From NCBI GenBank assembly GCA_964035545.1, contig OZ037765.1, positions 22,691,504-22,755,503 on the forward strand: 64,000 nucleotides of DNA, read 5' to 3'. The DNA is from Bugula neritina (taxonomy: Eukaryota > Animalia > Bryozoa). The notes under the pieces were generated by a model that worked only from the letters and a program-made list of their open reading frames with translations, was not told where the DNA came from and did no database searches. The position numbers and the translations under genes were made by a program. Below are positions 18,201 to 38,800 of this stretch, one piece after another; position 1 is the first letter of the stretch, and each line of letters opens with the position of its first letter.

Positions 18201-20980
18201 TGGTGATTTTTAGTAGCAGTCAGTTGCTACTGCCTCTTGTAGTGTGTACAGCTTACTATGAGAATAAACCTCATTATTTGCAATCTCCCTGACCTTTGAA
18301 ATTAATTTACCGTTGAGTTTGAGTTGCAATAATGGTGAATATACTTCAATATGGTGACTATTTTTGCGCTGAACTTTTCAAGTGACTCTAAGATCATATT
18401 CTACAATGCTTGAATTTTGATTCAACAAATAGAATTTACTTCACTACTTAGTTATGTAGAGCAATCAGGTATTGCAATATTCCTAGTACACTAGAATACC
18501 TTATGCAATGTAATATAATATAATATAACAATATTGTTTTTATGAAACTTTGTGACATAGTATAACTTTTTACATATTTTTACCAATATATTGTTTTATT
18601 TATTGCTATTTATTGTTTTCACATTGCTATTTATGGCTCTAATAAAGTACCAACAAAACCAAATATACAGCTGCTCTACAGTGAAAACGAATATCTACAT
18701 TTCAATGGAAACTGAGACTACAAGTAGATATATTGTCCAAATTTATTTTTGACACACCTTGAGGTGGAAAATTAAAAATATTATTTCCATTACACAAAAA
18801 TATTTGTTTTTTTGTTGCATTAGAACATGCATTTTAAATAAAAATAAATATGGAGAAAAGCTATGAATTCAGTTTTTGAGCTAAGTGAACAATACTATTT
18901 CGCCATATTTCTATATACCAGCATTGAACAGCTTTGCTTCTAATCTTTTTCTGCATCCTTTTAGGTGTTTGCACATATTTATTGTGTCCTATTCCTTTCT
19001 GTAGGCCCTTCTTTTCTGGCTTAAGATTGAGAGCTGGTTTTTTAGTTTGACTTGGCAAAGCTCTAAAATATTATTATATATGAAGGTAAATGGAAAAGTA
19101 TTATTGAAACAGCTGCAGAAAATCTCAATTGCTATCTATATCATATTTCAATTTCATTGCTCAAGATCGCATTTTCAATATTATAATCCTTACAGAAAAC
19201 CAGGGTCTGATCTTTTTAACCAACGAGCTTCTTTAGGTGTGATAGTGGCCGCCTGCTGACTTTGTTTCGGAGGAGTTAATGGAGTGCATCCAGTTGCACC
19301 CTCAGTTTCCACTAAATGAATAGTTGGGACTGCTGTTTTCTCTAAATGCAATCTAAAGAGTAAATCAAAGACAATGAATTTTTATTCTTTCAATAAGCTA
19401 AGTGAACAATATTTACCATTAATTTTTACTGGTATTGATGATGGGCACCATTACCAGTATCATACTCATAGCATGAGTATCAGTGCGTATGAATCATAAT
19501 ATTAATGGTATGTATCCAAGTGACTATGACACATTCTGATAATCATAAGTCTTTCATATTATCGCCATTATAAATGAATTTCCTTACAATAATGGTTATC
19601 GTGTAAATCATAAATGCAAACTTGTACTTGCAAGTTTATGTCATAGTCACATGAAATTGAATCAACACGGTCATGACAATCTTATTGACTTATACCAACT
19701 TGTAGTAATACTTAATAGTTATAGTTATACTTATTGTTGAAAATCAACATTAAAAAAACTATCATTATCGTCTAATTCTATCACAATCACTAAGTCAGTA
19801 TCACTATGAGTTTGAGTGAGTTATTCACTTACATGTTAATGAGTTTTGCTTTATACATGCCCATATTTGTAAATTGTTCATCACCAAAATGCTGAAAACA
19901 CAAACGAGAGTTGTTATCAGGCAGAAAGTTTTTTCTTTTTGTATTGACAAACTTGGTCTATTTTTCACCACACACAGTATCAGCAGGCCATTTAAACATG
20001 TGTTTTTCCTTGTACGAACACATTGCAGCTTCACACACTCTTCTTTTGCATTTGCCTTTAGAACTTGAAGCCATTCGTGTAGTCATGTCGACAGTAAGTG
20101 CAAGTGTAACTAGTAATATAGGTAGTAAGTTTGTTCATTAGAGTCCAATGGCAATATGAATATGAAATCGAATTTATATAGATAGCAAGCGACTACTACT
20201 AGTAGTAGTACTACTAGGCACAGGTTATATTGGTAATATCCGGTTACGGTAATGATAATCTATTTGGAAGCGTAATAATTTACATAATTGAATATGCAAT
20301 TATTTGTCATGTTTTATAGAAAAGTTTGCCACTCGTTGGATTTAGCTAATTTCTTTTTTAACAATATCGTGTTATCACCGTACTTAGCCACCCGTTCTAA
20401 TTACATCGTGAGGGTGAGGCTATTTCATTTTTCCGATGCTCAAAATTTCTAACGGAAGTAACTTTAGCTCCTAATATCAATAATAAAATGGTATCATTTG
20501 TTTTTTTCATTGAGCATTAGTTGTACTCTGTGTTTTAAAATTTATGTCAGTGTAGTGATTTATCTGTGTGTTGCAGTGGCTAAAAATAACACGCTGCGAA
20601 AGTATGCAATTATTACTATTAGTTATATAGTAACTAGGACTCGAAGCAGACCGGAAACCGGCGTAATACGTGTGCACTGAGAGCTTAGAAATTCGAAAGT
20701 TTTTTGGACATGCATGCACTAAACTTGTTATAAAATGAAATAGTATAGCCATCCACCCTTAAAGGGATGCTTAATTGATAGCTAAGATATAGATGAATAT
20801 TTTTATGCTATATAAGTAAAGTGTGTCAGGGATTCTTTAAGGTATGTACCTGCTAAAGAGGCACAACTCTCAATTATAAATTGAATACTAGAGACATTAG
20901 AAAAAATATTGCTAACAATTCAATTGCTTCAGTTGTGAAAGTTGCCTCATACCAACCTGTAGAGTGGAGTCTGATGACAT
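6203..20980 (-). CDS. BSCL2: Seipin (lipid-droplet biogenesis ER membrane protein), ~366 aa
   Basis: Model complement(join(20957..20980,15082..15312,7973..8167,6203..6853)), all introns phase 0 GT-AG. TM1 is followed by FIYGTFYYVYIP. Luminal motifs are GQSYNVELELDMPDSDVNQMAGTFMV, SSRLLMLKYRSWLLKILDTL and IYNAQLVLKAQFRGLKYYMYNWP, then TM2. The 8-codon first exon (MSSDSTLQ) is the least certain part. Confidence 0.9.
7255..7361. mobile_element. Small MITE-like element in seipin intron
   Basis: 10-bp terminal inverted repeats tagtccggtc ... gaccggacta around a non-coding interior. Confidence 0.35.
7583..7933. repeat. Two related ~105-bp fold-back (hairpin) elements, ~7583-7686 and ~7830-7933
   Basis: gctggaagcagcactgagttgg... 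pairs with ...ccgacgcagtgctgcttctagc, and tagaggcagcacaaagtttgg... pairs with ...ccaaactttgtgctgcatcta. Both start with a similar gaRgcagcac motif. Confidence 0.55.
9254..9597. mobile_element. PIF/Harbinger-type (Tourist-like) MITE, 344 bp
   Basis: ~70-bp near-perfect TIRs (gcctagggccacacggtgcgtattttcgcatgcgaaaattgaaa...), flanked by TTA on both sides (9251-9253, 9598-9600). Confidence 0.8.
12669..14870. mobile_element. Cluster of three copies of a ~780-bp non-autonomous TIR element (CAC...GTG ends, GATC-rich subterminal repeats; CACTA/EnSpm-like)
   Basis: Copy 1 is 12669-13452 (caccggctttccatg ... catggaaagcccgtg), flanked by AAT/AAT. Copy 2 is inverted at 13456-14231. Copy 3 is 5'-truncated at 14232-14870. 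Many agatcgatct motifs lie near the ends. Confidence 0.8.
16446..18188 (+). CDS. KolX / P2X7 cytoplasmic-ballast-like Cys-rich protein (transposon accessory gene), ~232 aa
   Basis: Model join(16446..16655,17539..17595,17664..17871,17965..18188) is open throughout. Motifs are GYQFEP, WCTCHRC..PT.EQSVCC, CITQHP, NRFCSYRFLVFW, KGERRPLPAC and VQATFP, typical of P2RX7-C-terminal-like proteins. Exon 2 boundaries are tentative. Confidence 0.75.
18861..20086 (-). pseudogene. THAP zinc-finger transposase remnant
   Basis: Exons are 19833..20086, 19194..19352 and ~18918..19062. They read CEAAMC...FKWP...EK*TKFV...LCFQHF...F and LEKTAVPTI. The conserved THAP Trp codon is TAG at 19958-19960, and no intact DDE domain is visible downstream. 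Confidence 0.75.
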
Positions 20981-23591
20981 CACTTGCAGGGTTTTGTCTA
21001 ATGACAGAATATATTATCACCTGAAAAAAATAAGTGACAATAATATCTGTGAGATATCTGGCAGCAACTTATCATGTAAATAGTGATGGAAAACTAAGTA
21101 ATTCAATAGTGTTAAACTATTATTAATAAAAAGTCTCAGATATCTACTGTAAAGTTAGAAATAAAAAGCAAACTTGCGTCATAAATTAATTTCACTTATT
21201 ATAAAGACCTTGACATAATATTTAAAATAAATATAATAATTATTATTATAATATGAGAATTTTGATAATCATTATATTATTATTAGCAATACTCAGACTG
21301 ATAATGGCACTCTCAATCTGATAGCAAGACAAATACTAATAGTAATAAAAATCATTACATGTGAAAATAATTATTATAGTTATAACTATAAGTTACAGCA
21401 ATACCTATAGGCTATACTTTATACTTATACTAGAACTAAAAGTAAAAGTAATACTAAATATAATACTAACAGTAATAGGCATAGTTATACCAATTAAAGT
21501 ATATTAATATACTAATAGTAATATACTAATAGTAATATACTAATAGATAATAGTTATAGTAATTATAGTTATAAAGTTATATTGCTAATATTACTATTAC
21601 ACTCACCAAATTAATAAATTATAGTGATAGTCATAGTTATAACTTATACTTATAGTTATAGTAATACTAATAGTACTAATGCCTACTAATACTCTTAGTC
21701 TTACTGTACAACTAAAACTAAAAGTGTTACACTTGTGACTTACACTTAGTCTTAGTCTTACTCGTACTCTTACAGTTACAGGTAATGTAACACTTACTCA
21801 TACGAAGCAACCCTTACTGTTGGCAATTAATCAACTTTAATAGTTACACGTAGTCTTACTCTTACTATTAGTAATACTGTATTATTATTATTATTACTAG
21901 TATTAATATTACTATTACTATTAGTATTAGTAAGAGTAAGACTAACACTAACAGTAACACTAACACTAACAGTATGAGTAACTCAAACTGTAAGTCCAAC
22001 AGTAAGTGTAACTGAAAATAAAAAGAATAAATGAGCATAAATTAAAATGATACCGTAGAACTAGACAGCAGTATGCAAAAGCAGCATTTTAAATATCAGC
22101 CGTTCAAAGGCTGGCTTAAAAGTAATCATTCATGAGTGACTTGCAACCATCAGTTTGAGTTTTGCGACTGAGCGACCAGTTGTGTACAAAGGGTTAAAGG
22201 TTAATAAATAATTATTATTATCACTCCGACACTGGTACGATACGGTACGCCGTACGGACCGACAAATTTAGTGTGAACTTTAACCCTTTGGCAAATTGAA
22301 ACGCTATGTGTAAAAAAAGGTGGAGTTTTCATTTGCGTAGTGGGATTTTCCAGAACTTTTAGCACGAATTTCAACTTGCATCATAGGAAATTAGAGGCCC
22401 AACTAATAACCTTCGCATAAAAGCTAAGTTATTTTGCTAAACTTAGCTACGATTTACTGTCGAGTGTTTACTCATACTGATTGCAAATTTTCTTCTATTT
22501 CAGTATTTAGTTTTACAACTTGTTGTTTTGTGCAAGAATTAAAAGCTGTGCTGTATGAGCAAGTCTGTTTAAGAATTGATTAAAAATCTTGTTAACAAGT
22601 TGTGTAGTGAACGGCGTTTCTTACTTTCTGAGGTAAAACTCACTAAAAGTAAAACTCCAATTACTTGAAGTTGAATAATAATTAACTCCTAAGTATTCAT
22701 TTTGAATATTGCTTACTGTTGCGGTCCTTGATTTTTAAAGTACTTTGCTAAAAAATATTCTAAAAACTAGTTATTTTAATTCATCAAAAATTATCAAAGG
22801 CATCAAATTCAATGAATTTATTCACTGTGAATAATTGTGTCAATTATTTATAATACGCCTACAAATTCTTAAAAAAAGTTACAAAGGTTTCCAGTTTTTA
22901 ACCTTGTAGATATGACACGACTCTACACAATAAGTTGGTTTACTTGAAGCTGCATGTATAGTTTAGTCTGACAAGAATGACTGCATAATTAAACTAGTTT
23001 AAAAATCTGACTTGAGAGAGTGTTTAATAAAAATAATATGATACATGTACTGCAATATTAGTAATTAAACTAAATCAAGTCATACTGTTGTAAAGGAAAT
23101 TTGTTGTGAACTAATAAAGAGGCATACAATGAAAAGTTGTTAAAAGCCGCCATAAAATATGAAACAAAAACAGTGTCCTAGTCTGTAGCCCATGGCATTG
23201 ATTCAACTAGCTAGGAAGACGAGGAAAATTAGTCTACTGCAGCCAAATATAAGAGTAATATAAGAATTGTTAGATAAGACCTCGAATTATAATAAAGTTT
23301 CTACTAGTAAACAAAAGCAAAGCAAAACAATAGCATAAAAATTGAAATTCTGATGCAGGAAGCAATGATGATACCATATGATGTGATGTCAAAATGAAGC
23401 ATTGAGTTCACTACCTTGCAGTGTCATTCACAAAGACACATCGCAACGTCATATCACGACGACACATCGCAATAACACACTGAAAGGACATGTCATAATA
23501 ACGTATCTAAAATGGAAAAACTGCATACATTAGTTATTAGTATATAAAACAGAGATTTTACGAATGTGTGTCACTTTCTGCATCGACTAAT

Positions 23592-26500
23592 CTAGGAGTC
23601 ATAATCCCTCTGAATACCATTAAACCTTGGAAACAGGTAAAGTTTTCTCATATGAGTGAGAGTATCCCAGACTACAACCAACTGTCCTCCACTCTCTAGA
23701 TTTCTATCTATACACAATTTTCTCACTTTAGTCTGTACCTGAACAAAGAGGAAAATCTCACTATTTATACCTCACTATACTATTTATATTCTCCCTCTAC
23801 CCGAACAGGACGGAGCGGAGATAGGTGAGAAAAAAAAATCAAATTATATTCTGAATGACCAACGCCTAACACAAAAACATCTTTACTATGACTCATAAAA
23901 ATGGTGAACATTTTTAAACGAATTATCCATAAAGTCACATATAAAACTTGGTGTTGACAAAAAGAAAGCAGACACAATCTAACCGGCAAGTAAAAGTTAT
24001 ATCACATGACTGATAATAGAGACGGGTAACACCTCTATTATTAATACATTATTACAAAAACAAATTAAAAGTTAGATAATTGAAGAGAGTTAATCATAAA
24101 ATCAATCCTTTGCAAGCAGCAGATATTACTTTGAGCCATTTTCAATTTGATGGACACTTCACTTTTTCATGTCTATAATTCTAATAAAAGGTAACCAAAT
24201 TATTAATGTTAGACTTACCTGCTTGAATAGAGTGTGAAGATCATGGTGACAGGCATGTTTATACATAGAAGATACAAGAGCTCTAATCATTAGAGATCCA
24301 TACCCAGGGTGAATCTTTGATATGAATGCTACAAAAAAACACAGAGTATCGTATGGCATATTCCAAACAGTATATAACTGTACATTACACACAGTATAGT
24401 ACTGTATATTACGCACAATATAATATTGTACTGGATTTTAACGCTCTAGTAGTTATATCGTGTCATTATTATAATTGACTTAGCGTAACTTTCTAAATAC
24501 TGATTAGCTGTTGTAATTATAACTAAGCTCTTAGCGTAATGATTTTGAATTGCCTTCCTATTTTTATTGTTTGTTTTTAAGTTACTGTAATAGTTTTTGG
24601 AGTTATGTTATGTTGAGATATATAAATAAGTATGTGAGCCGAAGCTCGTCCGAAGTCGGAGCCGAAGGCACGATGTCGGAAGGACTCTGTCCGAGATCGG
24701 GCAGAGTCCTTCCGACATCGTGCCTTCGGCTCTGAACTTCGTACGAGCTTCGGACCCCCACCAGTGGCAGGAATTTTTGCAGTATATAAGTGCGAGTTTT
24801 TCCAGTCTAAATCAGTACTGCACTGGAGCTGATACATGAAGGAACCAATAAAGACTACTAATTACAATTTATCAAAGACTCTTTATTCAAGAATAATAAT
24901 TGGCATGCAGACTACTTAGTCTATTTTCATACAACCCGCAAAATCATAACAATATTGTATTGTGTTACTTACACTCCATGCTAGATTTCACTACCAGCAG
25001 GTCATCATAATTCAGTCTAGTCATAGCCTTAGCATCTTTGTCTCCGGGAACTTTAGCAAGTTGAAGTGAGATACTTTGCGTCTCTTTCTTTTGAGGTTCC
25101 CCGATATCAAATCTGTCTACACCTCTTTCACCGTAATCACTCCTCTCTGTAACATAGATTGCACAACTTTTTGTTTACTTGAAATAATGAGTAGTCAATA
25201 ATGTCTAATATGAAAAAATTAGACTACTAAAAATTGAATATAAGTTACCTAACATACTTTGAATGCCAACTATCAGAACAGGCAACTATAGGGTAACCAC
25301 AAATAATCTTTAAAATATTACCTCCACTACACACTTCCAGTATAACAACCTTTGGTTTGCCAGCCATTCCTGTGAAGTTCAAAGGGGTCAGAAGGTCATA
25401 CACATCTGTTAGTTTGACTCGTTTCAGGTCTGTACCACATATGTGGTTGTCCAGCCCTCCATGAGTCATTATAACCAACACATGACACCCCAGATCTTTG
25501 TGTTCCTCCTTTTCTACCTCAGATTTCACAGCAGACAGCATTTCCTACAAATTACCAGAAAGCAAAATATTGAAGAAAGAAGTCATATATTCTAGTCCTA
25601 TTTCTATATCCTGAATTCATTTCAATAAACCACTATTAATGCTGATAGTAATAATAATACTGTTTTGATTTGTTTACTTTAGAAACTTGGTATGCTAGCT
25701 AATGTTTATTCAAAATGTTAAACAACGCAGTTTAGTGTTGTTGGATTAACTTTCCTTAAGTTGAGACCTCAAAATGTAGAAAATAGTAAACCCCAAAACA
25801 TTACTTTGATATTATATAGCCAGATATTTTGATGTACTTTTTAACCTCTAGCAGAGAGAGTCACACTTAATTTAAGTAAAGCAGCAGCAAAAAATACCTC
25901 TGCCTTCAGGTCTGTGTGTGTCACAACATCAAACTTAAGAGTTTTCAACATGGCAGACATATTCTCAACGTCCACATCTGAACCTTTCCTACACAAATCT
26001 GGTCTCTTAACAAAGTTCATGTTGTTTATTATCAGAGCTCTTCCTCTCTTTCTAGTCATATTAAACACCTATATAACAGAGAAATACTTGTAACTTCTGA
26101 ACTGTGCGCTAAAACTACACATAGTAAAAGAAACTCACGCAAGAGAACCCTTGATGGAAAAGATTTTTGTAAAATCGGGCTAAGGACTTATTCAGATGAG
26201 ACACAGGAGCAATTACGACTGGATGCTCTTCTTAAAATTAGCAATGGCATTTCTTGTGGGGTTCGAACCCATGACTTGGTGTTTACTAAGCAAGCACGCC
26301 ATGGTCTAGGGGTCTAAACTACAGATAGTAAAATTAGGGAATACTACCATTAGATAGGATCACCTTATCAGTGTTTGAGAACAGCTGTTTTATTTTTGGG
26401 TTAATTGTTGGATTTAGTCTAAGTCTTATAAACTTCATTTCTTCAACTTCCTTTTCATCAGGGTACAGATTGTCATCATTATCAGAGAGATCACTCAGAT

Positions 26501-29500
26501 CATCATTGGCTGCTCCAGTGGTAGTTGCAAGATCTGATTGGCTACTGTTGCTAACTACAAAATACAAATTCATACACATTATTACTTAGTTACAAAGGAT
26601 AAAAAAGAAATATTATGTAATAAAGGTCAGCAGGTTGGTAGTTAGCTGTAATGCAGGCATTTTTGTGGTAAAATCAGTAATTATTTGGATTGATTACTTA
26701 ACCAGTTCCAAGTTGTTTTTTTAGCAGCATTTAAAGAACACATGCTTGCAAAAACAGGTCATTTTGTATTTACCAGAACTAGTTGAGATTTCTTCAGCCC
26801 TGCGGGTATTCAGTTTATCCACAAATTCCTCCAACCTATCAGCTTCTCTATCAGACAGTGTTTCACCTGAAACAGCGAAATATTTCAGTTGAGTGCCGTG
26901 CAATTGTCCTTATTATTCTGAATATATTATTAAGAAATTAGGAGAATTAACTTAACTACTCTCTATAAAACAGACATGCAGTAAATTGCAGTCATGGATT
27001 TATTCTACAGACACTGCAACACAATGTAAGCAAACATACATGGGTAAAGCAAAGCACTGGGTATCTCCTCATCACCACACAGAGTTTTTGAAGATCCGCT
27101 ACACAGCCTGGCCTTTTTTGGCAGAATTTTTAAAGAACGGAGGCACCACTGAGGCCGTGACACTTTCTTAGGACAAGGAAGTCCTAGCAGCAAGCAGTGA
27201 GCACAGTAGCATGTAGGAACTGGTCTACTTGCTTTCCAGATTTCTAGAACATGTCTGAGGATGTTGTTGCTGGTGGTGATAAGTCTCTCCCACATTCTGC
27301 TGACCTTGGCAGCATTAGATGACACATAGAGCAACACCTTTCTAGATTTGTAGTCATGAACCAGCTGTGTGCAGATTTCATCTTGATAGACATTGGCTCC
27401 ATTTCTCTTCACTTTAATAACAGCAGGGTCATCTGGAAACATCTCCAACAAGCCAACAGTCATCTGGTGGAAGACATAGTGTGGCAGAGCTAGACCATTG
27501 AATTGTGTCTCAATGCAGAGGAACAGGTTTTTAGGTGAAGAGTAGGAAATGTTGTAGAAATTTCTAGCAAACTGAGGTACAATAAACCATGGCTCTTCAA
27601 ACTCGACATGTATTGGACCATACAGCAAACGGAATGTTTTAAGTAAGCAGACTGCGACTTCAACATCCTGAAAGCTGTTAAATAGTGTTTCTTTCTCAAT
27701 CAAATAAAAAAGAAGACATTCCATCATCAAGCCAGTGTCAGTAAAACGACTAACCGAATCCTCGAAGTCCTGCTTCTCAACACCCATTCCAGTCTTTGAA
27801 TAGTATGGCTGGAACTTGTCAACTCTACTCTGCCATATGTCGGGATCATGATGATACAGGACACATAGAAGTTTAGTGACTTCTGTAATCTTGTGGAATA
27901 TGTATGGCTGGAGAGAATTGATATCTTTATACCACAAGACTTTGCCACAGTCATGCATGTATGTGAGAATTATGTCCAGCTGACTTGATTCAATGTGCTG
28001 AAGTTCTGTCTGTACGACTTTCAGTATTTCATCAAAAGTGCTGAACACAGAGGGGATAGAGAGAACTTTTTCATTCACTTCCTCCCAGACTGAAGGCAGA
28101 TCTTTGACAAAATGTTTACTGTTTTGAAGAAGAGAATCTTTGATCAGGTCATAAACTTCATACTTGTCATCTTTCCCCACGCCATAAATGCCCTCCTCAA
28201 GAAAAACTTTGCCAGCTGATTCACTGAAATGTTTGATTTGAGCGAATTCTCCACCCAATGCCTTCTCTTCCCTAATAATCTCTTCACACAGCTGATTCGA
28301 AGTTTCCAGAAAGTTCTTGCGAATCCTCTGAAATTCTGCATCTTGAAACTTATCTTTATGAGTAAAGATAAGTTTTGATGAACCCAGATTTGGATTAGAG
28401 AGATAGAGGTGAGACATGTAATCAAAAGCCAATCTTCTAACAGCCTCTCTGTGTGTAGATTCCTTTGAAATTTTGCTATACTGTTCCATGTTGACTACAA
28501 TGACTGGAATGCAATTCTGTCTTAGTGTTAGTTGATAGGTTATATGGTAGACCTCCTGGCCTCCCATATCAATGAGACGGAGTACTGTACCATCCACCTC
28601 AACCTCCTCAACATTAAACACCTTTGTTGTCTCATCTATCACAGCATTTGGATCTCTGTTGGTCAACACTCTTCTTCTGTCAGCATTCTGTAATGTTCTG
28701 ATTAGACTTGTTTTCCCAGCCATCGTATTACCCAGCACAGCTATTGTGGCAAATGGAATGTTTTTACCAGCACCTTTAGCCAAGTCTGTGTAATATTGTC
28801 TCACAGCATCTACTCCTCTCTTGCATACTTCTAGTGGAGGGGATGTGAGAGCATTACAACCTTTCACCACCAGGTTAAAAAGTTGAGTTAATTGGAATAT
28901 TTTAGAATCTAAGGATGCCAGAGAGTGATTGCTGGATATATTCAGTTCTCGCAGACTACTCAATGTGTACACTGAAGGTGGTAAACTGGTGAAGTTATTG
29001 TATGATATGTGAAGTGTTTCTAACTTCTGTAGACTTTGTATGCTGAAAAATATGAAATATAATTGGAGTTGTATAAATGGTTTCACACAAAAATAAATAT
29101 TAAAATTCCATCAATTACATTATAATAAACTGCTACAATGCATATACGTACATAGCTGAGCAATGCATAATAAAATAATCATAATTCATAATTAGGAGTT
29201 ATACTTCCAGTTACTGAGTACAGCATAGCATGTAAATAAGAGAATGCATTACATAACAGTAACAGTAGAACTAAATTTTATTGGTGCAGCATTAGAATAC
29301 ATCTCAGTATAGCAACCCTGTGAGATCATGTATTAAATAAACACGGTTGAAATTGATTGTTTTGGTAGTTGTTTTCCAGTCAAAACATTACTAAAAAAAT
29401 TTAATATTATTCAACATTATATTATATAATATTTAGATGAGTTTTAGTATAACTCATTTATTAAAGAAATAATTTATTAAAGACACGAGTTTCTATCAGA

Positions 29501-32500
29501 ATACACCTACTACTAGGTTTCGTACTGTTTATATTATGACTCATTACCTACTAGCAACTCAGATTCCACTCGTAAATACTCTAACTGTAAATTCAGCAGA
29601 CTACAGTAGTTTTCTTATGACAAGGAATCTAGTCGACTGAGTCAAGTAAAAAAAAAGGCAGATAACCCTGTAACATATCATAGTACTGCACCTGTTTGAT
29701 AGAGTTTTTAATAGAGTTACATTATAACAGAAACATTTTGAACTATAATATAACACGCACCTGTTTGGTAGAGTCACCAGTTCACAGTCCCTCATGTCCA
29801 ACTCTTTCAGTGATACTAAGGATGTGAATGTATTGTCAGGTAGACCTTCAGGTAGCTTAATATCTGATATATCCAACACCTCAAGATTCTTCAGTAAGGA
29901 TATGCTGTAATGTAGCATAGTGCATACACATATGAAATTGTGCATATTATCATACTTTATAGGAATATAATTATTTGATACAACGTATTAAACACTATGT
30001 GGGGCACACATGCACTACACAAGATACTTCAAGTATTAAAAATTTGTACTATAGGTCACTGTATACTGCAATATAATAATTTATTTATGGCCTGTAATAT
30101 TTGTTACAGTACAATACTGCACTATATTATGATACACACCTGTTTGGTAGTGTTGGTAAGTTACAGTGACCTATGTTCAACTCTCTCAGTAATAGTAAGG
30201 ATGTGAATATATTGTCAGGTAGACCTTCGGATAAGTGATTCCCCAATAGACCCAATACCTCCAGATTTTTCAGTAAAGATATACTGTAACATAACATGTA
30301 TATGGAAATAAAATCATGTATAATTTTCAAGTAAGAATATAGCGACGGCATGCAACTGACTGAACTTCTAATCAAATCTATTTATACGGGCAATATTTTG
30401 AGCATTTTCATCCATCTTAATGTCACGCACACATAGACTGCACAATATTTCTCAGAGATGGTTAAAAAAACATGGGAAATGAAAAAAACCGGTGGCTGAA
30501 AAAGTCAGACGAACTTCAGAATTTTGCAAATCAAAACATGAATATATAGAGTTCTTCGCTGTGAATAAGAAGCTATATGGACTGTTTAACAAGGAGATAA
30601 GAACTATAAGGTGCAAGGACAAAGAAAGGATCAAGAAGGTTGATTGTCAAAAATTAGACTTTATTAAAACAAATTTAATGGAATAAACATATATCTTACT
30701 CATTTTTGGAGGAACTGACATGCAAAGTACACATGTATTGTAAAATCTACTCCAACTATATTGTTCTAGCAATTATGTAGGTTATGAATTACTACTGTAT
30801 AGTAAGCATTGTCTTGCCTTATTCTATAACATACATATGTAATTGTATTCATACTTGTTTGGTAGAGTTTTCAGTTTACAGTACCACATGTTTAACTTTC
30901 TCAATGACAGTAAGGATGTGAATATATTGTCAGGTAGACCTTCGGATAGGTCATTGCCATATATATTCAATACCTCAAGATCCTTCAGTGAAGATAGGCT
31001 GTAATATAACATAAAGGTATATTACAATGATTTAAATAAATATAATCATTTGATACTATACATGTAATAAATGCTGATAGCAAAATGTGTACAATTCAAG
31101 TCACTTCAAATATATGAAAGTACATTATAAGCTTCCACGCAGTTATATTAACAACACTTATAACTTATATTTGTTACAGTATTATTATGGAGTCCAGGGC
31201 GGTCCAACAGTTGGCTCCAGGGCCGGATGCAGCCCCAGACTAAATCTATGTGGACTCTAGGGATCTAGAAAATAAAATTATTTTGCCTGAGTGTGTATAT
31301 ATAAATTGGAGTGGAAAATCCACTATTTAGATTTTTTATTCATATGCATGAAATAAAAGATGGGACTTCATTGTGTAATTATTCATAGAAATTTGAAATA
31401 AAGTATATTGGAAAATGCTGATGTCATGGCCCTAGCTAAAGCTAAATTTTAAATTAAAGGGGCCCTTGCCACTGAACTAATCCATTTCAGTGACCCTCGT
31501 TCTGAAAAGGCTGGACACCCTTGTTCTACAATTTAATACAATACACACCTGTTTGGTAAAGTTACCAGTTTACAGTTTTCCATGTCCAACTTTTTTAGAG
31601 ATAATAATGATGCGAATATATTGTCAAGCGGTTTCCAGCAGAGGTCATTTCCCGATATATCCAATACTTCAAGATTCTTCAGCGAAGATATGCTGTAATA
31701 CAACATAAAAATTAATACTTTTAGAGCTTTATAGTATATATTTATCATTCTACACTATAATATAACACACGCCTGTTTGGTAGAGTTAAGAGTTGACAAT
31801 CCTGCATGTGCAACTCTATCAATGATGGTAAAGATGTGAATATATTGTCAGGTAGACCTTCAGATAGGTTATTCTCTGATATATTCAATATCGCAAGATT
31901 CTCCAGAGAGAAGATGCTGCAACCAACATATAACATACAGGTATAAAATAATTGTAATCAATTTAATTACCAAATATTATTTTGGTTGAAGGAGATTAAT
32001 CAACTTGAAATTAAATTGATCGTAAATTAAAATACAATGAATCAGATAAATAACACATTTGTTACTAAAGCTAGTGTTATTGTGAAGGGAGATGACATTA
32101 CATTCCATCTAATACTAATAGCACCTTCTATGATTATAGCTTTATATTACAACTGGTCAAGTCAAGACCAGTTCTGTTCCTGCTATCGGTAAGTATACAT
32201 GTAAACTGGTACCACCCGTGGCATGCCCTCCCCTGTTTTAATTTGAGAGGCTTTAAGGGTGCTGAGACACCCTTGGATTGATGTTGCTTGTAGACAATAG
32301 AGCAAGACACAGATTGATAGAAAACCAACAATTTAGTTACTTTCCAACAGAAAAAATCCAGCCACAACCCACATAGATTCATCACACCTCTGTGGTAAAT
32401 AAGGTCACACATGCTTCTCCTGCTAATTAGCAACCAATACCCATACCAAACCAACAAAACTGTGTGATGTACATTTTGGGACTTTCTGCTTTTTATCGCT

Positions 32501-32832
32501 CTCAACATGCTTTTGTTTATTAGTTTATTACTTTGTTAACTTTCTTGAGTACATTTTATCTGTTATATCTTTGGTTACAAAGTTTTGCTTTGCAATATAA
32601 CAACATTATACCTGGCCCAGTCAGCTTTACTGTCTACTTCATATAGTCTTAGATGTGTCAGGTGGGGAAACAGAGTGTTGATATTTGGAGGAATGTCGTA
32701 CTTCAGTATAACATGAGTAACTGTATGATGTCTACTTATATCATTGATCTCTTCTATAGTGTAGTGCCTAGTGTCATTCTCCATCCACTCACCCTCGTCA
32801 GCTTCATCTATACTGGACGTGTTGAACCACAT
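23592..32832 (-). CDS. LRR-Roc-COR-caspase fusion protein (ROCO GTPase with C-terminal C14 caspase domain), ~1350 aa
   Basis: Model complement(join(32612..32832,31773..31916,31549..31692,30855..30998,30140..30283,29761..29904,27040..29042,26774..26866,26364..26554,25898..26068,25322..25544,24973..25146,24219..24328,23592..23738)). Every junction is phase-compatible and the frame is open (4053 nt). Roc motifs: GNTMAGKTSL, DMGGQEVY, THKD. COR: LPSVW...LTYMHDCGKVLWY. Caspase p20: RGRALIINN, RKGSDVD, IMTHG, GKPKVVILEVCSG. Caspase p10: DLLVVKSS, GSLMIRAL, TLTHMRKLYLFP. The start codon and any upstream exons are uncertain. Confidence 0.85.
24639..24753. repeat. 115-bp GC-rich near-perfect hairpin in a caspase-domain intron
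   Basis: ccgaagctcgtccgaagtcggagccgaaggcacgatgtcggaaggactctg pairs with cagagtccttccgacatcgtgccttcggctctgaacttcgtacgagcttcgg. Confidence 0.85.
26143..26230. repeat. Dispersed repeat, second copy at ~53626-53708
   Basis: cgggctaaggacttattcagatgagacacaggagcaattacgactggatgctc here versus cgggctaagaacttattcatttgtggcacaggagcaattatgactggatgctc at 53.7 kb. Confidence 0.7.
26245..26322 (-). mobile_element. tRNA-derived (SINE-head-like) fragment
   Basis: The minus strand has a B-box/T-arm gggttcgaaccc, but I could not fold a complete cloverleaf. Confidence 0.35.
29761..31916 (-). repeat. Five tandem 144-nt LRR exons (two LRR units each, phase 2-2)
   Basis: Exons at 31773-31916, 31549-31692, 30855-30998, 30140-30283 and 29761-29904 each encode SIxxLxNLxVLxIxxNxLxEGLPDNIFTSLxxLxxLxMxxCxLxTLPN. 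Flanking intron sequence is also similar between copies. Confidence 0.9.
31195..31523. mobile_element. Degenerate hAT-like MITE in an LRR intron
   Basis: Ends cagggcggtccaac ... gctggacacccttg resemble CAGGGGTGTCCAA-type TIRs. The 8-bp TSD is not preserved. Confidence 0.5.
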
Positions 32833-35800
32833 CCTGAACTTCTCTACAAAATAATATGTACCAGTTTAAAAATAACAATTTTGATAACCTATAACAGAAT
32901 TTTTAACACTATATACAGTATTAGCTTTATCTATGATGGAAGTGGTAAACTATAACATAATAGTAATAATTTTCTAAAAGTTATGCTACTTTTTATGTTG
33001 TAAATACTTAAGAATAAATTGTTGAACAAATTGAAATCCTGTGACATATTTGAGTGTATTTTCAGATTTTATCCACTTTGTCAAACTATGTATAACCTAG
33101 CAGCATGACTCAACCTTGTAACTGGTGCAGCAGTAGCATACTACAGCAGCTGAGAGGGTAGCCATGTTGTTCATAATTCTGTACAGAATGTGTTGTATTA
33201 CAAAATATTAGGCAAAACAATAATAATATATATTACAATATAGGTCAGTGTGATAATATAACACAAAATAATATAATATAGATGGGTAGAACAACTATAT
33301 TGCAATATAATATAGGCAAGTACAATAATATAACATTATATAATACATTATAATGTATGTCAGTATAATGATTTTATTATAATGTCGGTCACTATGATAT
33401 AACATAACAAGCACTAACAAATATGTAATACAACCAATAGCTGTAGTCAGAACACAACTCTAAGGAAAGTATCTATATTTCCTATTCCACAGATATTTAC
33501 TAGAGCTAGACCCTATTGAAAAACAAGCAATTCAACAGCTAGCTCGCTGATACTAAACCACAACACCCTATGATGCCTTTCTTTAAGACTTTTATCTTGT
33601 GTCATACACACATAACATAAAAATTAATAGATTGGTTAGAAGTGACAACGGTACTAAGTGGTGTTAATCACGCTCACTGTCGTGATCTTTGCTGCCTTTT
33701 GATTGGCTGGTTCAGCCGAATATTGGGGAGAAATTGACCATGCTCAATTGTGAAAATCGGGCGAAAATTCAGCAAAAAGCAAAATCGGCCAATAAATCTT
33801 GTGACCTAACAAATTTGGCCGACAGTTTTTCGGCAGATTTTGTTGCAAAATCAGCCTACGTACATGCAGCTTGAAAGATAGTACTTTTAGCAGAAGCATA
33901 GAGCTATCTATGTAAAGCTGTAAAACATTCATAGCCAAGAAATGTAGCACCAAAGCTTCAATATACAATTACCAGAACATACAAATACAACTAAGCGATT
34001 GCATCAAACATAACATACATGACTAGTCATAAAAGTGTCTTCAAGTTTCTTTTTTCCAAAGTTTACTATGAGGAAATGTTTTTAAAAAAATTACTGAAAC
34101 ACAAATACATGTGCTACTACCAAAATATATCTCTCCTAGAATAAGAATTTCATAGCATAGTTTGGATTTTAAGCAGCAGTAAAATTTTGAGATGTTAATG
34201 AACTATTTCTATATGATTAGGTCAAAGGCTATACCTGCTAATGGAATACAACTCCTAATTATAAAATAAGTATAAGGGACATGGGAAACCAGTCTCTAAA
34301 AGTATCAGATCAAGGTTCACTCATATAATTTCTATAGTTACTGGTTGAAGTATTTTTATATTTTACTAACTTATCACGGATTTCTCTGGAGGTGGAGTTG
34401 GAGGTGAAGTTTGAGGTTGAGGCACAGATTTATGTTGACTCATCTTGTGATCACTAGTTAGAGCTAAAATCATATTCAATAGTCTTAATTTTAACCTTTA
34501 AAATACATATTGATGAGCGTATTCCAAAGTAGTTATAAAAATATGCAAAGGCAAGTATCACTTAAAAGGCTGTGCTGTTGAAAAATGTATTGCAATAATA
34601 AAGAGGAGAGAATATAGCAATTCAAAAAATGCTGTTAAGTAGAGTAGATTGTAACCAACAAAAGGTTATCAATCAAAATCCACTGTATTTCACAAACGTG
34701 TCTTTTTTAATTTGTCAATAATTGTGAGTATCTCCAAGACGCTCACGTTGCAAACATAAATTTTTAACCCTGTTTTCTGTGACAAATCAGCCTACTATTG
34801 CCTTGTGTGGAATAGAGTAATCTCTATTAAATAAACTTTGCTGATTAACAAACTAATTCTTGTTGGTTATTGAAGATATGCAGTAATAGCAAATATAGTT
34901 ATGACATTAACTCCAAAGTTTTTTCTTCACTGATGGCAGCAGTAAAATAAATCTAGAATAAAACTAGAAACCCATTTGTAATAATGGAAGACATGAAGAA
35001 GAGCACGAGAGGTTCTAGCAGCAAAATCAGAGGCTACAAGAGGTGCACTGTTGAAGGTGGCTGCAGTAATAGGACCCATGACTCAAGAAACAACAGCAAT
35101 GCTCAATTAAAAGTAATTTCCACAGTTACTCCTACCCACATTCGAGGGTATATATTTTGAGGCTGGCCAATTAAAAAGTCATTGAAGAAAAGGGAAATTT
35201 TGATTTAGTTGGTTAGATTTTCCAGCACAAATTGGTAGACCAGTTGAGGCATCAAAACATGCCTAAGCTGTTGTTAGACTATACAAGACCTGTCAGACAA
35301 ATCAAGTTGACTTCTATAAGCCATTACTGCTTTCACAACTTTCAGAGTATCCATGGCAACATCTAGCTTCAAACCTGGTCCACTATACAAACTATCACCA
35401 CTTACTCATTGTACATTATTACACCCAGTATGTTGAAATCTTCAAGCTCACTTCTTTTACCAACAGCGCTATGATCATAATGAAATCTATTTTTTGCTGC
35501 CACAGTGTCCCAGAATGCTGACAAGCAACAATCAATCTCAGTAAGCTGCACAAGAGTTTCAAGAGTTTGCTTTGGACTGTCATTTCTCCCAAGTGGTTAG
35601 ATCGTGATTAGCTAGTGTGAAATTGAAGGCAGTGTACACGCCAAAGATCTATTGCCATATCATAGCACGCCATTAAAAATGGAAACTCAACTGCCAAGCT
35701 ATTTATGGTGAGAAAATTTTGAACAATAGTATTTACCATACTGTCTATTCTGGTACCAGCAACACTTGGCTCAGACATTATTGCGAAGAGGGAGCACAGC

Positions 35801-38800
35801 TACAAACAAAACATGAAATTCAACCAATTTACCACTGTCCGAGAAATCCCGCAAGACTTTCCTCAAATAAAAATGTGTTTGTAAAAGACATAAAATGGAA
35901 CTAACAGTCACCAACTCACTTCCTTACAAATCACAGAGCATCTAGTTATCGAAAGGTGATACTGATAGCATACAATACAACAGGCATTCTCTGTGTCTAA
36001 CGGGTCTATCAATCGAATGTGATCAGAATAAACCAATTAACGACTGGCAGAGTCCGTAGTTCGCCTCAACACCGGGTAATTCTACCTGATCTGATATATG
36101 TGGCTTCTAATTTTTGTTAATTTTTCAAACAAAATAAGTTTCGGTTTTAAAAGTTCTCGTGACAATTTTAATTCAAATCAGCATATACTAATAGCAATAA
36201 TTAATACATACTAATAATTTATTTAAAGATAAATAATGTGTTTGGTACGGTTGATAATTTTTGTAATTTACTTAGAGTTAGTTGACTTTTTTAATTTGAA
36301 AACTCCGTGAATAGCATTCATAAACGGATCCAGTGTTATTACTATTATACTGTCAATGATAATGTAAATTTTAGACGTGCTTCATGCTTGCTGCAAAGTC
36401 AAATCAAATTTATAATTTTGAGTGTTTTCAAGTGTTCTATGTCTTCAAAGGTATTCGAAGGTATTAAGTTTACTTTTAGACTTGTTTAACTTTAAGTTTC
36501 ACTTTCAGGTTGCAATCAGAAAACTTGTCGCAGGAGGGCGCTCTGCCGACCCTCTTGCACCTACCCAAGCAATCTGCTAGGCGGGCTAACTGTTTTACCT
36601 TTTTCTCCCAGAGTACATGTTGATAATTTTTACCCATACACCTCTGTCATCTGTGACTGACAGACATAATCTGACTGAAGACTGCAAAGCGTAACTTTAT
36701 TTTGGATATGCTCACGAGAAGTTAGCGAAACAAAGATAAAATGGTATGGCTATAGCAGTTAGTAGTTTACAATAACCGATAGCTAAATTATCCGCCACTA
36801 GCCGATAATGTGTGATAAAAAAACTTTTATATTGGGAACTGAGGCTTGCGCAGAAAATTGCAGACCACCATTGGTCTCCTCATAAGCTTCAGCTCTTTAG
36901 TAAGTGTCGAGACTAGTAACTGCTTATCACTTTTTTTGTAAAACTTGCAGATTCTGCGCTAAACAGTTTTTTAACTTGTCGCATCTGAAACAACTCTTCA
37001 AGGTTTGTATAAGTGAAAAGATCCAAGCCAATGGTGCTAGTTAGTCAGTGACTGGCCGTGTCTTTTCGATTCTAGGTAGGGCTGTTATTTTCAAAGCATA
37101 ATTTTAATTTTTTTGTAGACTAAGTAATCTATTGTTACCATGGTATTGTGAGTTTCTTTTTAGAATGAAATAATATTTAAATAGACAAGAATTTTATCAA
37201 CGTTAGTAATAGTTATACCAAGTCTAATAGTAATACTAATAGTAATAGTAATACTAATAGTAATAGTATTCTCATTCTGTATTACTATTACTATTAGTAA
37301 TATTAATACTAATAAGTAATAGTTATAGTAATGGCTAGCAAACGCAGCTGTACTCTAGTAGTAGTAGTAGTATTAATACGTCTACTAGTAGACACTCGCA
37401 GTTTGAGAGTCAGAGTGAGCCGCACTGGCAGTAAACGAGTGTCAGTGGAAAACAGAAGTAATTCATAACAAAACAAAATTATATTGATATTGATATTATA
37501 ATTTGTGGTTGCAATTGCTTATTTCTTTTTTTTATATTTATATTTATACTTTTTGCAAATGATGAAATTGTTATACTAGTTACTATTAATTTTACCTAAA
37601 GTTAGTATCTGTACAGGTACCCGTACTACTACTAAACTTACCTGAGTAGTTGGTTAAAATAAAGCCCAAAGCGTGACAGTGGAACTAATTAAAAATTGAA
37701 AAATTAAAAAGATCATCATGTTCATATTCATATGTTCATTTGTTGTTTTCAATTTTATTTAGTTATTTATTAACTTTGCCTTTAAATCAAAATGTTAATT
37801 GTAGATATTCCTGTTTAATCACAATGTCAATATAAGTATGAATATCAATATGACAGGTTCACAATCATATTCATAGTAACAGTGCATTATTTATGCCAAC
37901 TAAACTGTTTTGATTTTTACTAAAACTCAATAATTATATATCATATGTGCCATATGACTAATCTGAAATGCATATAGTAATTATTACATTTCACCCTAAT
38001 TGGTTATTACATTAACTAGTATTAGTATAACTATATCAGACAGATTTTGTTTTTATTGTATTTGTATATAAATGAGTTGAGAAATTTTGACATCGTGTTG
38101 TGATTACTTTATGGTTTGTTATTGTTTATGCTTTATTAGTTATGCGATAACACCAAGTGGTATGATTTAATTTTTATTACAGAGTTTTATCTAACTGATA
38201 TCAAAAGTGTTGTTTTTTCCAAATAAATGTTGTATGTAAAGTTTTAGTTTTATATACTTCAACAGTAAATTTCCTTAATTCAAAGTATACTAATAATGGT
38301 TTTTAAATTTTCTGCAAATAGTATTTTGAATATTTTAAACTTATTTTTTAACTTGTTGCTATCACAATTAGTGTTATATGTGCAAATGCTTTTGCTTTAA
38401 AATCAACTGTGTCTGTAACCAAAGCACGTAGATAGTGGTATAAATTTTTTATTTGATCACAAATTAATTATATAGATGGAATGATTTTATTGTAAAACTG
38501 TTTTATTTTTCTGTATTGTCTATTTTATGTTTAAGGTATGTAATTTATTACATTTGATTAGAATATGGCATGTAATAAATTCTCTTGGGCTTTAGTTTTG
38601 AAGAAATTTACAAAATCTTTATTTAAGAAACGGTGCTTTATCTACAGATGCCTGTTGAAACTGTGTGTTAGCAGTGTTTCTATCTGAAGATAGTATGATA
38701 AGTAATAAAATATTTTGAATATTCAATGTTGTGAGTGCTTACTATTATTTTCTAAAGCTGTTGTGTGAACATTAGTTACAAATTATAGCACTCGATGTTC

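Follow-up and report, generated by a model that had tools for sequence, protein, structure and literature searches.

Germline cassette exons encoding paired leucine-rich repeats form part of the arm of an LRR-Roc-COR-like-caspase gene in the bryozoan Bugula neritina and probably serve ligand recognition

A stretch of 64,000 nucleotides from the genome of Bugula neritina (contig OZ037765.1; the whole stretch is called the window here) contains five short cassette exons, each encoding two leucine-rich repeats (LRRs). These cassettes, together with three LRRs of the large exon that follows them, constitute the N-terminal arm of an intact, spliced gene whose product combines LRRs, a Roc GTPase, a COR-like region and a caspase. 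The reading put forward here with good confidence is that the cassettes are germline-encoded units of a sensor arm, turned over in frame within a gene family and driven apart at nine exposed positions, with ligand recognition as the likely role. Under this mechanism, cassettes would be gained and lost through unequal recombination between exon-plus-intron units, while the nine exposed positions would be driven to differ and the framework conserved. Variable ligands would then be bound by the concave LRR face, and the Roc GTPase switch would link this recognition to the caspase. The gene consists of the following features.

32612..32832, minus strand: exon 1, 221 nt, with an ATG start at 32832 and a phase 2 end
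31773..31916, minus strand: cassette exon e1, 144 nt, two LRRs; GC donor here, GT in L031 (an orthologue or allele)
31549..31692, minus strand: cassette exon e2, 144 nt, framework CWKPLDNIFASL, the most diverged; 80-nt intron between it and e1
30855..30998, minus strand: cassette exon e3, 144 nt, with a terminal AA instead of AG that gives an Asn junction codon
30140..30283, minus strand: cassette exon e4, 144 nt
29761..29904, minus strand: cassette exon e5, 144 nt, spliced to the large exon
27040..29042, minus strand: large exon, 2,003 nt, encoding three further LRRs, the Roc GTPase and the COR-like region
25245..26068, minus strand: caspase frames (25841-26068 and 25245-25541), Peptidase_C14; bounds are those of open reading frames (ORFs), not of mapped exons

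The anatomy of the cassettes agrees with the original prediction, which was made from the letters of the window and described five exons of exactly 144 nt in phase 2-2 between 29761 and 31916; all five are present there, on the minus strand. Each cassette is composed of one nucleotide closing a codon, 47 codons and two nucleotides opening the next codon, and all flanking introns are therefore of phase 2. A polypyrimidine tract and AG precede all five, and GT follows four of them, with GC after e1. None of the possible pairings of exon ends with exon starts among the window cassettes creates a stop codon, which upholds the claim that cassettes could be skipped, lost or duplicated in frame. Each cassette encodes two 24-residue LRRs, the first of the Asn type and the second of the Cys type at the LxxLxLxxN/C motif. 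The framework is nearly invariant, as had been proposed: GLPDNIFTSL is identical in three of the five exons, e5 and e2 hold variants of one or three residues, and TLPN occurs in every copy. The tetrads at the variable positions (NISE/DISG/NIYG/GLLG/DISD and HMQD/DMEN/NMWY/NIGH/DMRD) were re-read identically. In a repeat search of the window, the five copies formed a single 204-nt repeat family with 67-78% identity, far above chance for AT-rich DNA.

Variation in the cassettes is concentrated at nine codons, namely 11, 14, 16, 34, 36, 38, 39, 41 and 43. The family was sampled through 200 kb of its main cluster and 29 short paralogous loci, and selection was assessed by counting methods. Among 78 unique cassettes, entropy reaches 1.3-3.2 bits at the nine positions, with up to 14 residues, and at most 0.87 bits elsewhere; in a set of 73 cassettes drawn only from paralogues, the nine positions hold 1.2-3.3 bits. 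All 78 cassettes, like the five of the window, carry two LRR cores; the framework residues L4, L7, L32, L35, L42 and P46 are invariant in them, and L10, L17 and C40 are kept in 77. A tree-based parsimony count gives a ratio of nonsynonymous to synonymous change (dN/dS, omega) of 1.77 (p=0.0008) for the nine codons, against 0.42 for the others; nonsynonymous change in the former runs at 3.2 times the synonymous rate of the latter. The cleanest test is provided by seven independent recent intragenic duplicate pairs, in which divergence by class of site is as follows.

Introns: 3.45%
Synonymous sites of the flanking cassettes: 5.2%
Nonsynonymous sites in all other codons: 2.6%
Nonsynonymous sites at the nine codons: 30%

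Both contrasts for the nine codons are significant, with Fisher p=1e-21 relative to synonymous sites and p=7e-47 relative to introns. It could be argued that this variability reflects relaxed constraint only, with exposed x positions that are irrelevant to folding drifting neutrally, in which case neither adaptation nor recognition would be involved. Exposed LRR residues are generally the least constrained, and omega at the variable codons of the window locus, at 1.1-1.6, is not significantly above 1, as such drift would have it. This explanation is nevertheless highly improbable, because drift cannot exceed the neutral rate, and nonsynonymous divergence at the nine codons in the recent duplicates reaches 5.8 times that of synonymous sites and 8.7 times that of introns in these same units. 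The nine codons have thus been driven apart, and a mechanism that targets them may lie behind the excess.

A comparison of the locus with its closest relative gives a more limited picture. The closest outside sequences are gene calls on metagenome contigs, the best of which, L031, lies on a 22-kb contig. L031 and the window are colinear over 8.8 kb with 90.7% identity, and the number and order of exons are conserved. A comparison of cassette number between the two types, which the original prediction had called for, revealed no difference, with five cassettes both in the window and in the 9%-diverged L031. Pooled intron divergence is 9.3%, and the coding parts of the gene compare with L031 as follows.

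Cassettes: nucleotide divergence 3.5-9.7%, dN/dS 0.62
Large exon: nucleotide divergence 4.9%
Roc: dN/dS 0.14
COR-like region: dN/dS 0.20
Exon 1: dN/dS 0.08

For this comparison the variable set was defined from paralogue cassettes only. Of the 33 replacements that separate the window from L031, 17 fall on the nine codons (Fisher p=4.8e-6), and a set of LRR x positions chosen a priori gave a like result (p=1e-4). At the nine codons pN is 0.157 and pS 0.10, corresponding to an omega of about 1.6 (p=0.09), and the other codons have an omega of 0.38. Between the five window cassettes dS is about 0.56, with an omega of 1.1 at the variable codons and 0.27 elsewhere; at a dS so near saturation and with such an omega, positive selection is not demonstrable from the window alone. 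The positive selection expected by the original prediction is accordingly found in the family (omega 1.77; pN 0.30 against pS 0.052) and not in the window gene, where omega does not significantly exceed 1.

The donor of e1 (31771-31772, minus strand) is GC in the assembly and GT in the orthologous L031, with the 80-nt intron next to it; no transcript of the window type was seen.

The two sequence types are about 9% apart over a whole region of 18 kb (window 20837-38543 against L031). Contigs of the RNA-like runs carry L031-type sequence, and DNA run X13 holds both types; over 32396-32622, one X13 contig has 0 mismatches and another has 18 mismatches and 2 gaps. These types could be deep haplotypes or alleles, the product of a pooled sample, or sibling species or lineages. 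Their presence bears on the suggestion that the partner tracked by the variable face is endogenous or conspecific, as in colony allorecognition or co-evolution with host proteins, and not microbial. The animal is probably colonial, and two types at one locus, both in a single DNA run, would suit such a partner. However, the divergence of about 9% spans all 19.5 kb of the contig compared, flanks included, with no peak on the LRR exons; a flat divergence of this kind fits sibling lineages as well as balanced alleles. An endogenous or conspecific partner is given only a small chance.

For the reading in which nine exposed positions face a ligand, the predicted fold of a cassette is informative. 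In an AlphaFold2 model of a single cassette, for which 38 cassettes were aligned, residues 9-11 and 34-36 form strands and residues 23-29 a helix. Variable positions 11, 34 and 36 fall inside the modelled strands, and 14, 16, 38, 39 and 41 fall in the loops right after them. In solved LRR proteins, strands and adjoining loops of this kind form the concave face. The nine variable positions are thus predicted by the model to be exposed, on or just after two beta-strands, in the concave-face region.

The cassettes belong to a large family in which their number changes. A query with one 47-residue cassette returned 678 candidate matches in the 216-Mb genome, and all 150 of the 150 that were scored are full-length; a Roc-COR query found at least 79 exons in the genome, 77 of the 79 without stops. 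Seven neighbouring paralogues in the 200 kb hold 8, 7, 9, 2, 2, 4 and 4 cassettes, one two-cassette paralogue of the cluster being truncated. The form of 144 nt, phase 2 and AG..GT borders is kept in 36 of 36 cassettes of the 200-kb cluster, and 82 of the 85 cassettes of the first 29 paralogous loci share the 144-nt, phase 2 form. Gain and loss are always in frame because every unit has this length and phase. Introns between cassettes fall into length classes of about 269, 332, 372, 446, 770 and 883 nt. Members of a class are 91-99.4% identical from end to end, whether they belong to one gene or to different genes. Such near-identical classes indicate that the duplication unit is the exon plus an intron. 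Two segmentally duplicated genes of the cluster differ by one cassette (8 and 9), and one cassette of the nine-cassette gene shows 1 mismatch to one neighbour over its first half and 0 mismatches to the next over its second half, which is the pattern that unequal crossover inside an exon would give. Exon duplication and shuffling, as originally proposed, are in this way borne out at the family level by cassette counts of 2-9, exon-plus-intron duplicates and one chimeric-looking cassette.

Three other loci of the family deserve mention in their own right. L046 (G000:C1:34351032-34352570) has exon 1 and only two cassettes and lacks a Roc-COR exon over the roughly 40 kb up to the next gene; it is a truncated gene or a stranded cassette pair. 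In L036-L038 (G000:C1:34251959-34279763), seven cassettes of one paralogue are spread across 23 kb, with some introns of 3 to 9 kb, whereas the introns of its neighbours measure 270-880 nt; this suggests large insertions. A second block at G000:C6:2.5-6.3 Mb contains about 40 Roc-COR exons, 64-68% identical to that of the window gene, and is a distinct subfamily.

Evidence from sequencing runs concerns the use of the cassettes in transcripts. In the RNA-like runs X1, X2 and X6, contigs lie over the exons and the intron bins are empty, while DNA run X13 covers all. The joint of exon 1 to e1 (31916->32612, GT..AG) occurs in X1 and X6, and the joint of e5 to the large exon in X1, X2 and X6; both are absent from X13. 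One RNA-like contig joins e2, e3 and e4, joints that X13 lacks as well, and inclusion of e3-e4 is also seen in contigs of X1 and X2. Joints found in RNA-like runs and lacking in the DNA run show that the gene is spliced as modelled, with cassettes included.

Exon skipping was the further possibility raised by the original prediction. The symmetric cassettes might be alternatively spliced into up to 32 LRR arms at this locus, on top of the germline diversification. Every junction is in frame and makes no stop, the GC donor of e1 is weak, and ROCO LRR exons of brown algae are reported to be alternatively spliced (Teng et al. 2024, PMC11378527). Moreover, a joint 29042->31549 with GT..AG ends occurs in one X6 contig and would leave out e3-e5. 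Yet the short side of this joint is only 21 letters, and its depth is 1349, about 15 times the roughly 70-90 of the gene's other X6 contigs, as for a word common to paralogues; the joint is therefore left as ambiguous. The X1 and X2 contigs include e2-e3-e4 and e3-e4 fully, and the rest of the unusual joints show replaced letters or ends that are not canonical. Inclusion in germline order is thus documented, skipping has one ambiguous joint to its name, and an isoform repertoire is doubtful, though it has some chance of being right; assembled contigs, on which all the splicing evidence rests, cannot give isoform ratios. The remaining odd joints (those that go back, carry 29-35 replaced letters or have non-canonical ends) were read as transcripts of paralogues at 90% likeness.

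A more far-reaching version holds that cells or zooids mix cassettes, through regulated exon skipping or through somatic recombination or conversion among hundreds of near-identical units. This is very unlikely; if true, receptor sets would be specific to cells or colonies, an invertebrate counterpart of the diversity of variable lymphocyte receptors (VLRs) or Dscam with a caspase built in.

The window gene itself differs from the cluster in tempo. It is solitary, about 10 Mb from the main cluster, and its cassettes are mutually 70-81% identical, each being nearer to cluster cassettes (78-89%). They form no clade. The window introns keep remnants, about 70% alike, of the family intron classes. 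The intron flank common to the window cassettes is short, about 12 nt upstream and 25 nt downstream, and matches between the window's own introns extend over only 17-43 nt. The shared flanking sequence noticed originally is real, and exon-plus-intron units are duplicated at the family level, but within the window itself little of it can be traced.

A recent tandem origin of the five window cassettes was considered and ruled out by their 70-81% likeness, the absence of a clade and the 17-43 nt of intron sharing.

The window gene is an old, dispersed and conserved member that keeps the family pattern without recent turnover. Diversification at this locus is slow, as its old cassettes, stable cassette number and transcripts that include the cassettes indicate. 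Its isolation, the presence of a GC donor and cassettes that are the most diverged from the family consensus (82% mean identity, against 89% for cluster cassettes) could instead be taken for the marks of a decaying, functionless outlier. However, all exons are open, dN/dS is low in exon 1 and in the Roc and COR-like parts (0.08 and 0.14-0.20), exon number and order are the same in L031, and spliced RNA-like contigs exist, so that decay is extremely improbable.

The remaining domains of the conserved gene define its architecture. In the large exon, Roc is recognized by Pfam PF08477 with 30.5 bits (cut-off 27), and its LRRs pass the threshold with LRR_8 at 28.2 bits and LRR_4 at 27.1 bits. Single cassettes scored one by one reach 21-24.6 bits with LRR_8, against a cut-off of 27; with LRR_1, whose cut-off is 20.6, e5 scores 21.0 and e1 20.5. 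Peptidase_C14 (PF00656) matches the two caspase frames with values of 4.4e-10 and 2e-9. The order of exon 1, cassettes, Roc-COR and caspase is not peculiar to the window, as a caspase also lies downstream of the Roc-COR exon in L031 and in six paralogues. Copies of exon 1, 70-78% identical, head each paralogue. In phmmer comparisons with solved structures, the LRR-Roc junction could be aligned with chains of LRRK2, LRRK1 and Chlorobium Roco; the nearest protein clusters in the feature space of Atlas are MFHAS1-like, ROCO and Roc/COR families, and a homologue, P0032, 40% identical, holds COR-A (PF16095). The donor of the large exon, GTATGT at 27039, agrees with loose contig ends there. Neither exon 1 nor the two ORFs lying between large exon and caspase gave a Pfam match. 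By eye, exon 1 has no obvious signal peptide and its N-terminus is acidic; the protein is apparently cytosolic.

In the caspase frame 25245-25541, the His is kept (THGG) and the Cys stands in an unusual EVCSG, not QACxG.

Several points weigh against the reading of the cassettes as a diversifying sensor arm. Omega at the variable codons of this locus ranges only from 1.1 (between cassettes, saturated) to 1.6 (against L031, p=0.09). Recombination among cassettes violates the tree behind the family omega of 1.77, and the variable set used for the duplicate pairs was picked from those very cassettes. The mean predicted local distance difference test score (pLDDT) of the cassette model is only 70. 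In the ORF of the large exon no Pfam match to COR was obtained, and phmmer on solved structures did not reach the region. A receptor role in recognition is likely as an inference from pattern.

Two introns of the window contain additional material. One is an interspersed repeat outside the cassette unit.

31360..31498, no strand: interspersed repeat inside intron e2-e3

Matches to this repeat, 75-76% identical, occur away from cassettes at five or more places of the 200-kb cluster, and in the runs the repeat stands out by its high depth and numerous loose ends. In intron e3-e4, both ends are about 70% like the family's 269-nt intron class, and a middle stretch of about 280 nt (about 30444-30724) is extra; it holds a plus-strand ORF (30492-30686) and is possibly an insertion.

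The architecture resembles several known systems, each in part. Like MFHAS1, LRRK1 and LRRK2, it joins LRRs to Roc: the LRR-Roc junction aligns to LRRK1 and LRRK2, and an MFHAS1-like cluster is among the nearest. Unlike it, these genes exist in a single copy or few copies and are without arrays of cassette exons, reported hypervariable LRR faces or a caspase. Plant and animal nucleotide-binding LRR receptors (NLRs) and LRR genes of the ribonuclease-inhibitor type offer a parallel in their cytosolic sensor-switch-effector layout, their birth-and-death clusters and the diversifying selection that acts on their exposed LRR residues. A pair of LRRs is likewise encoded by one exon in mammalian NLRP and ribonuclease-inhibitor genes. 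The differences from NLRs are that the switch is a Roc GTPase and not NACHT or NB-ARC, and that the caspase is part of the same chain and is not recruited by an adaptor. The findings suggest a one-chain sensor-switch-protease family that may take on the role of NLRs in a phylum in which immunity has hardly been studied.

With VLRs, the family shares an almost invariant LRR framework, hypervariable x positions of LxxLxLxxNxL and many genomic cassettes. VLR cassettes are intron-less donor pieces that are copied somatically into an incomplete gene, and the receptor is secreted or membrane-bound. Here, by contrast, a complete germline gene contains the cassettes as regular spliced exons bordered by AG and GT/GC, and exon 1 has no obvious signal peptide. 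As the cassettes are ordinary exons and transcripts follow the germline order, the mechanism is not VLR-like.

A close parallel in design is found in the LRR-ROCO genes of brown algae, in which LRR exons are shuffled and concave-face positions are under positive selection (Zambounis et al. 2012, PMC3341825; Teng et al. 2024, PMC11378527). The original prediction was framed by these genes, and that frame does not transfer to the source of the DNA, as the DNA is that of an animal and the G+C of the window, about 32%, is unlike that of brown algae. Both systems have an N-terminal LRR arm followed by Roc and a COR or, here, COR-like region, LRR exons of equal length and phase, clustered paralogues with differing exon number, positive selection on concave-face residues (here at the family level) and a proposed role as variable receptors. 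In brown algae the unit is a 72-bp exon of constant phase encoding one LRR (PMC11378527), whereas here it is a 144-nt exon with one Asn-type and one Cys-type LRR, and the animal gene adds a caspase after the Roc-COR-like part. On this comparison, the likeness is probably a convergent arrangement. A literature search found no LRR-Roc-COR-caspase family and no LRR cassette exons for a bryozoan or another animal. Precise residues and loci are now offered for studies of ligand binding, allorecognition, symbiont control and isoform use. Cassette-exon LRR-ROCO genes have so far been proposed as diversifying receptors only for brown algae; an animal now shows the same design rebuilt, with a two-LRR unit, a fused caspase and an excess of about six-fold over silent sites at nine codons.

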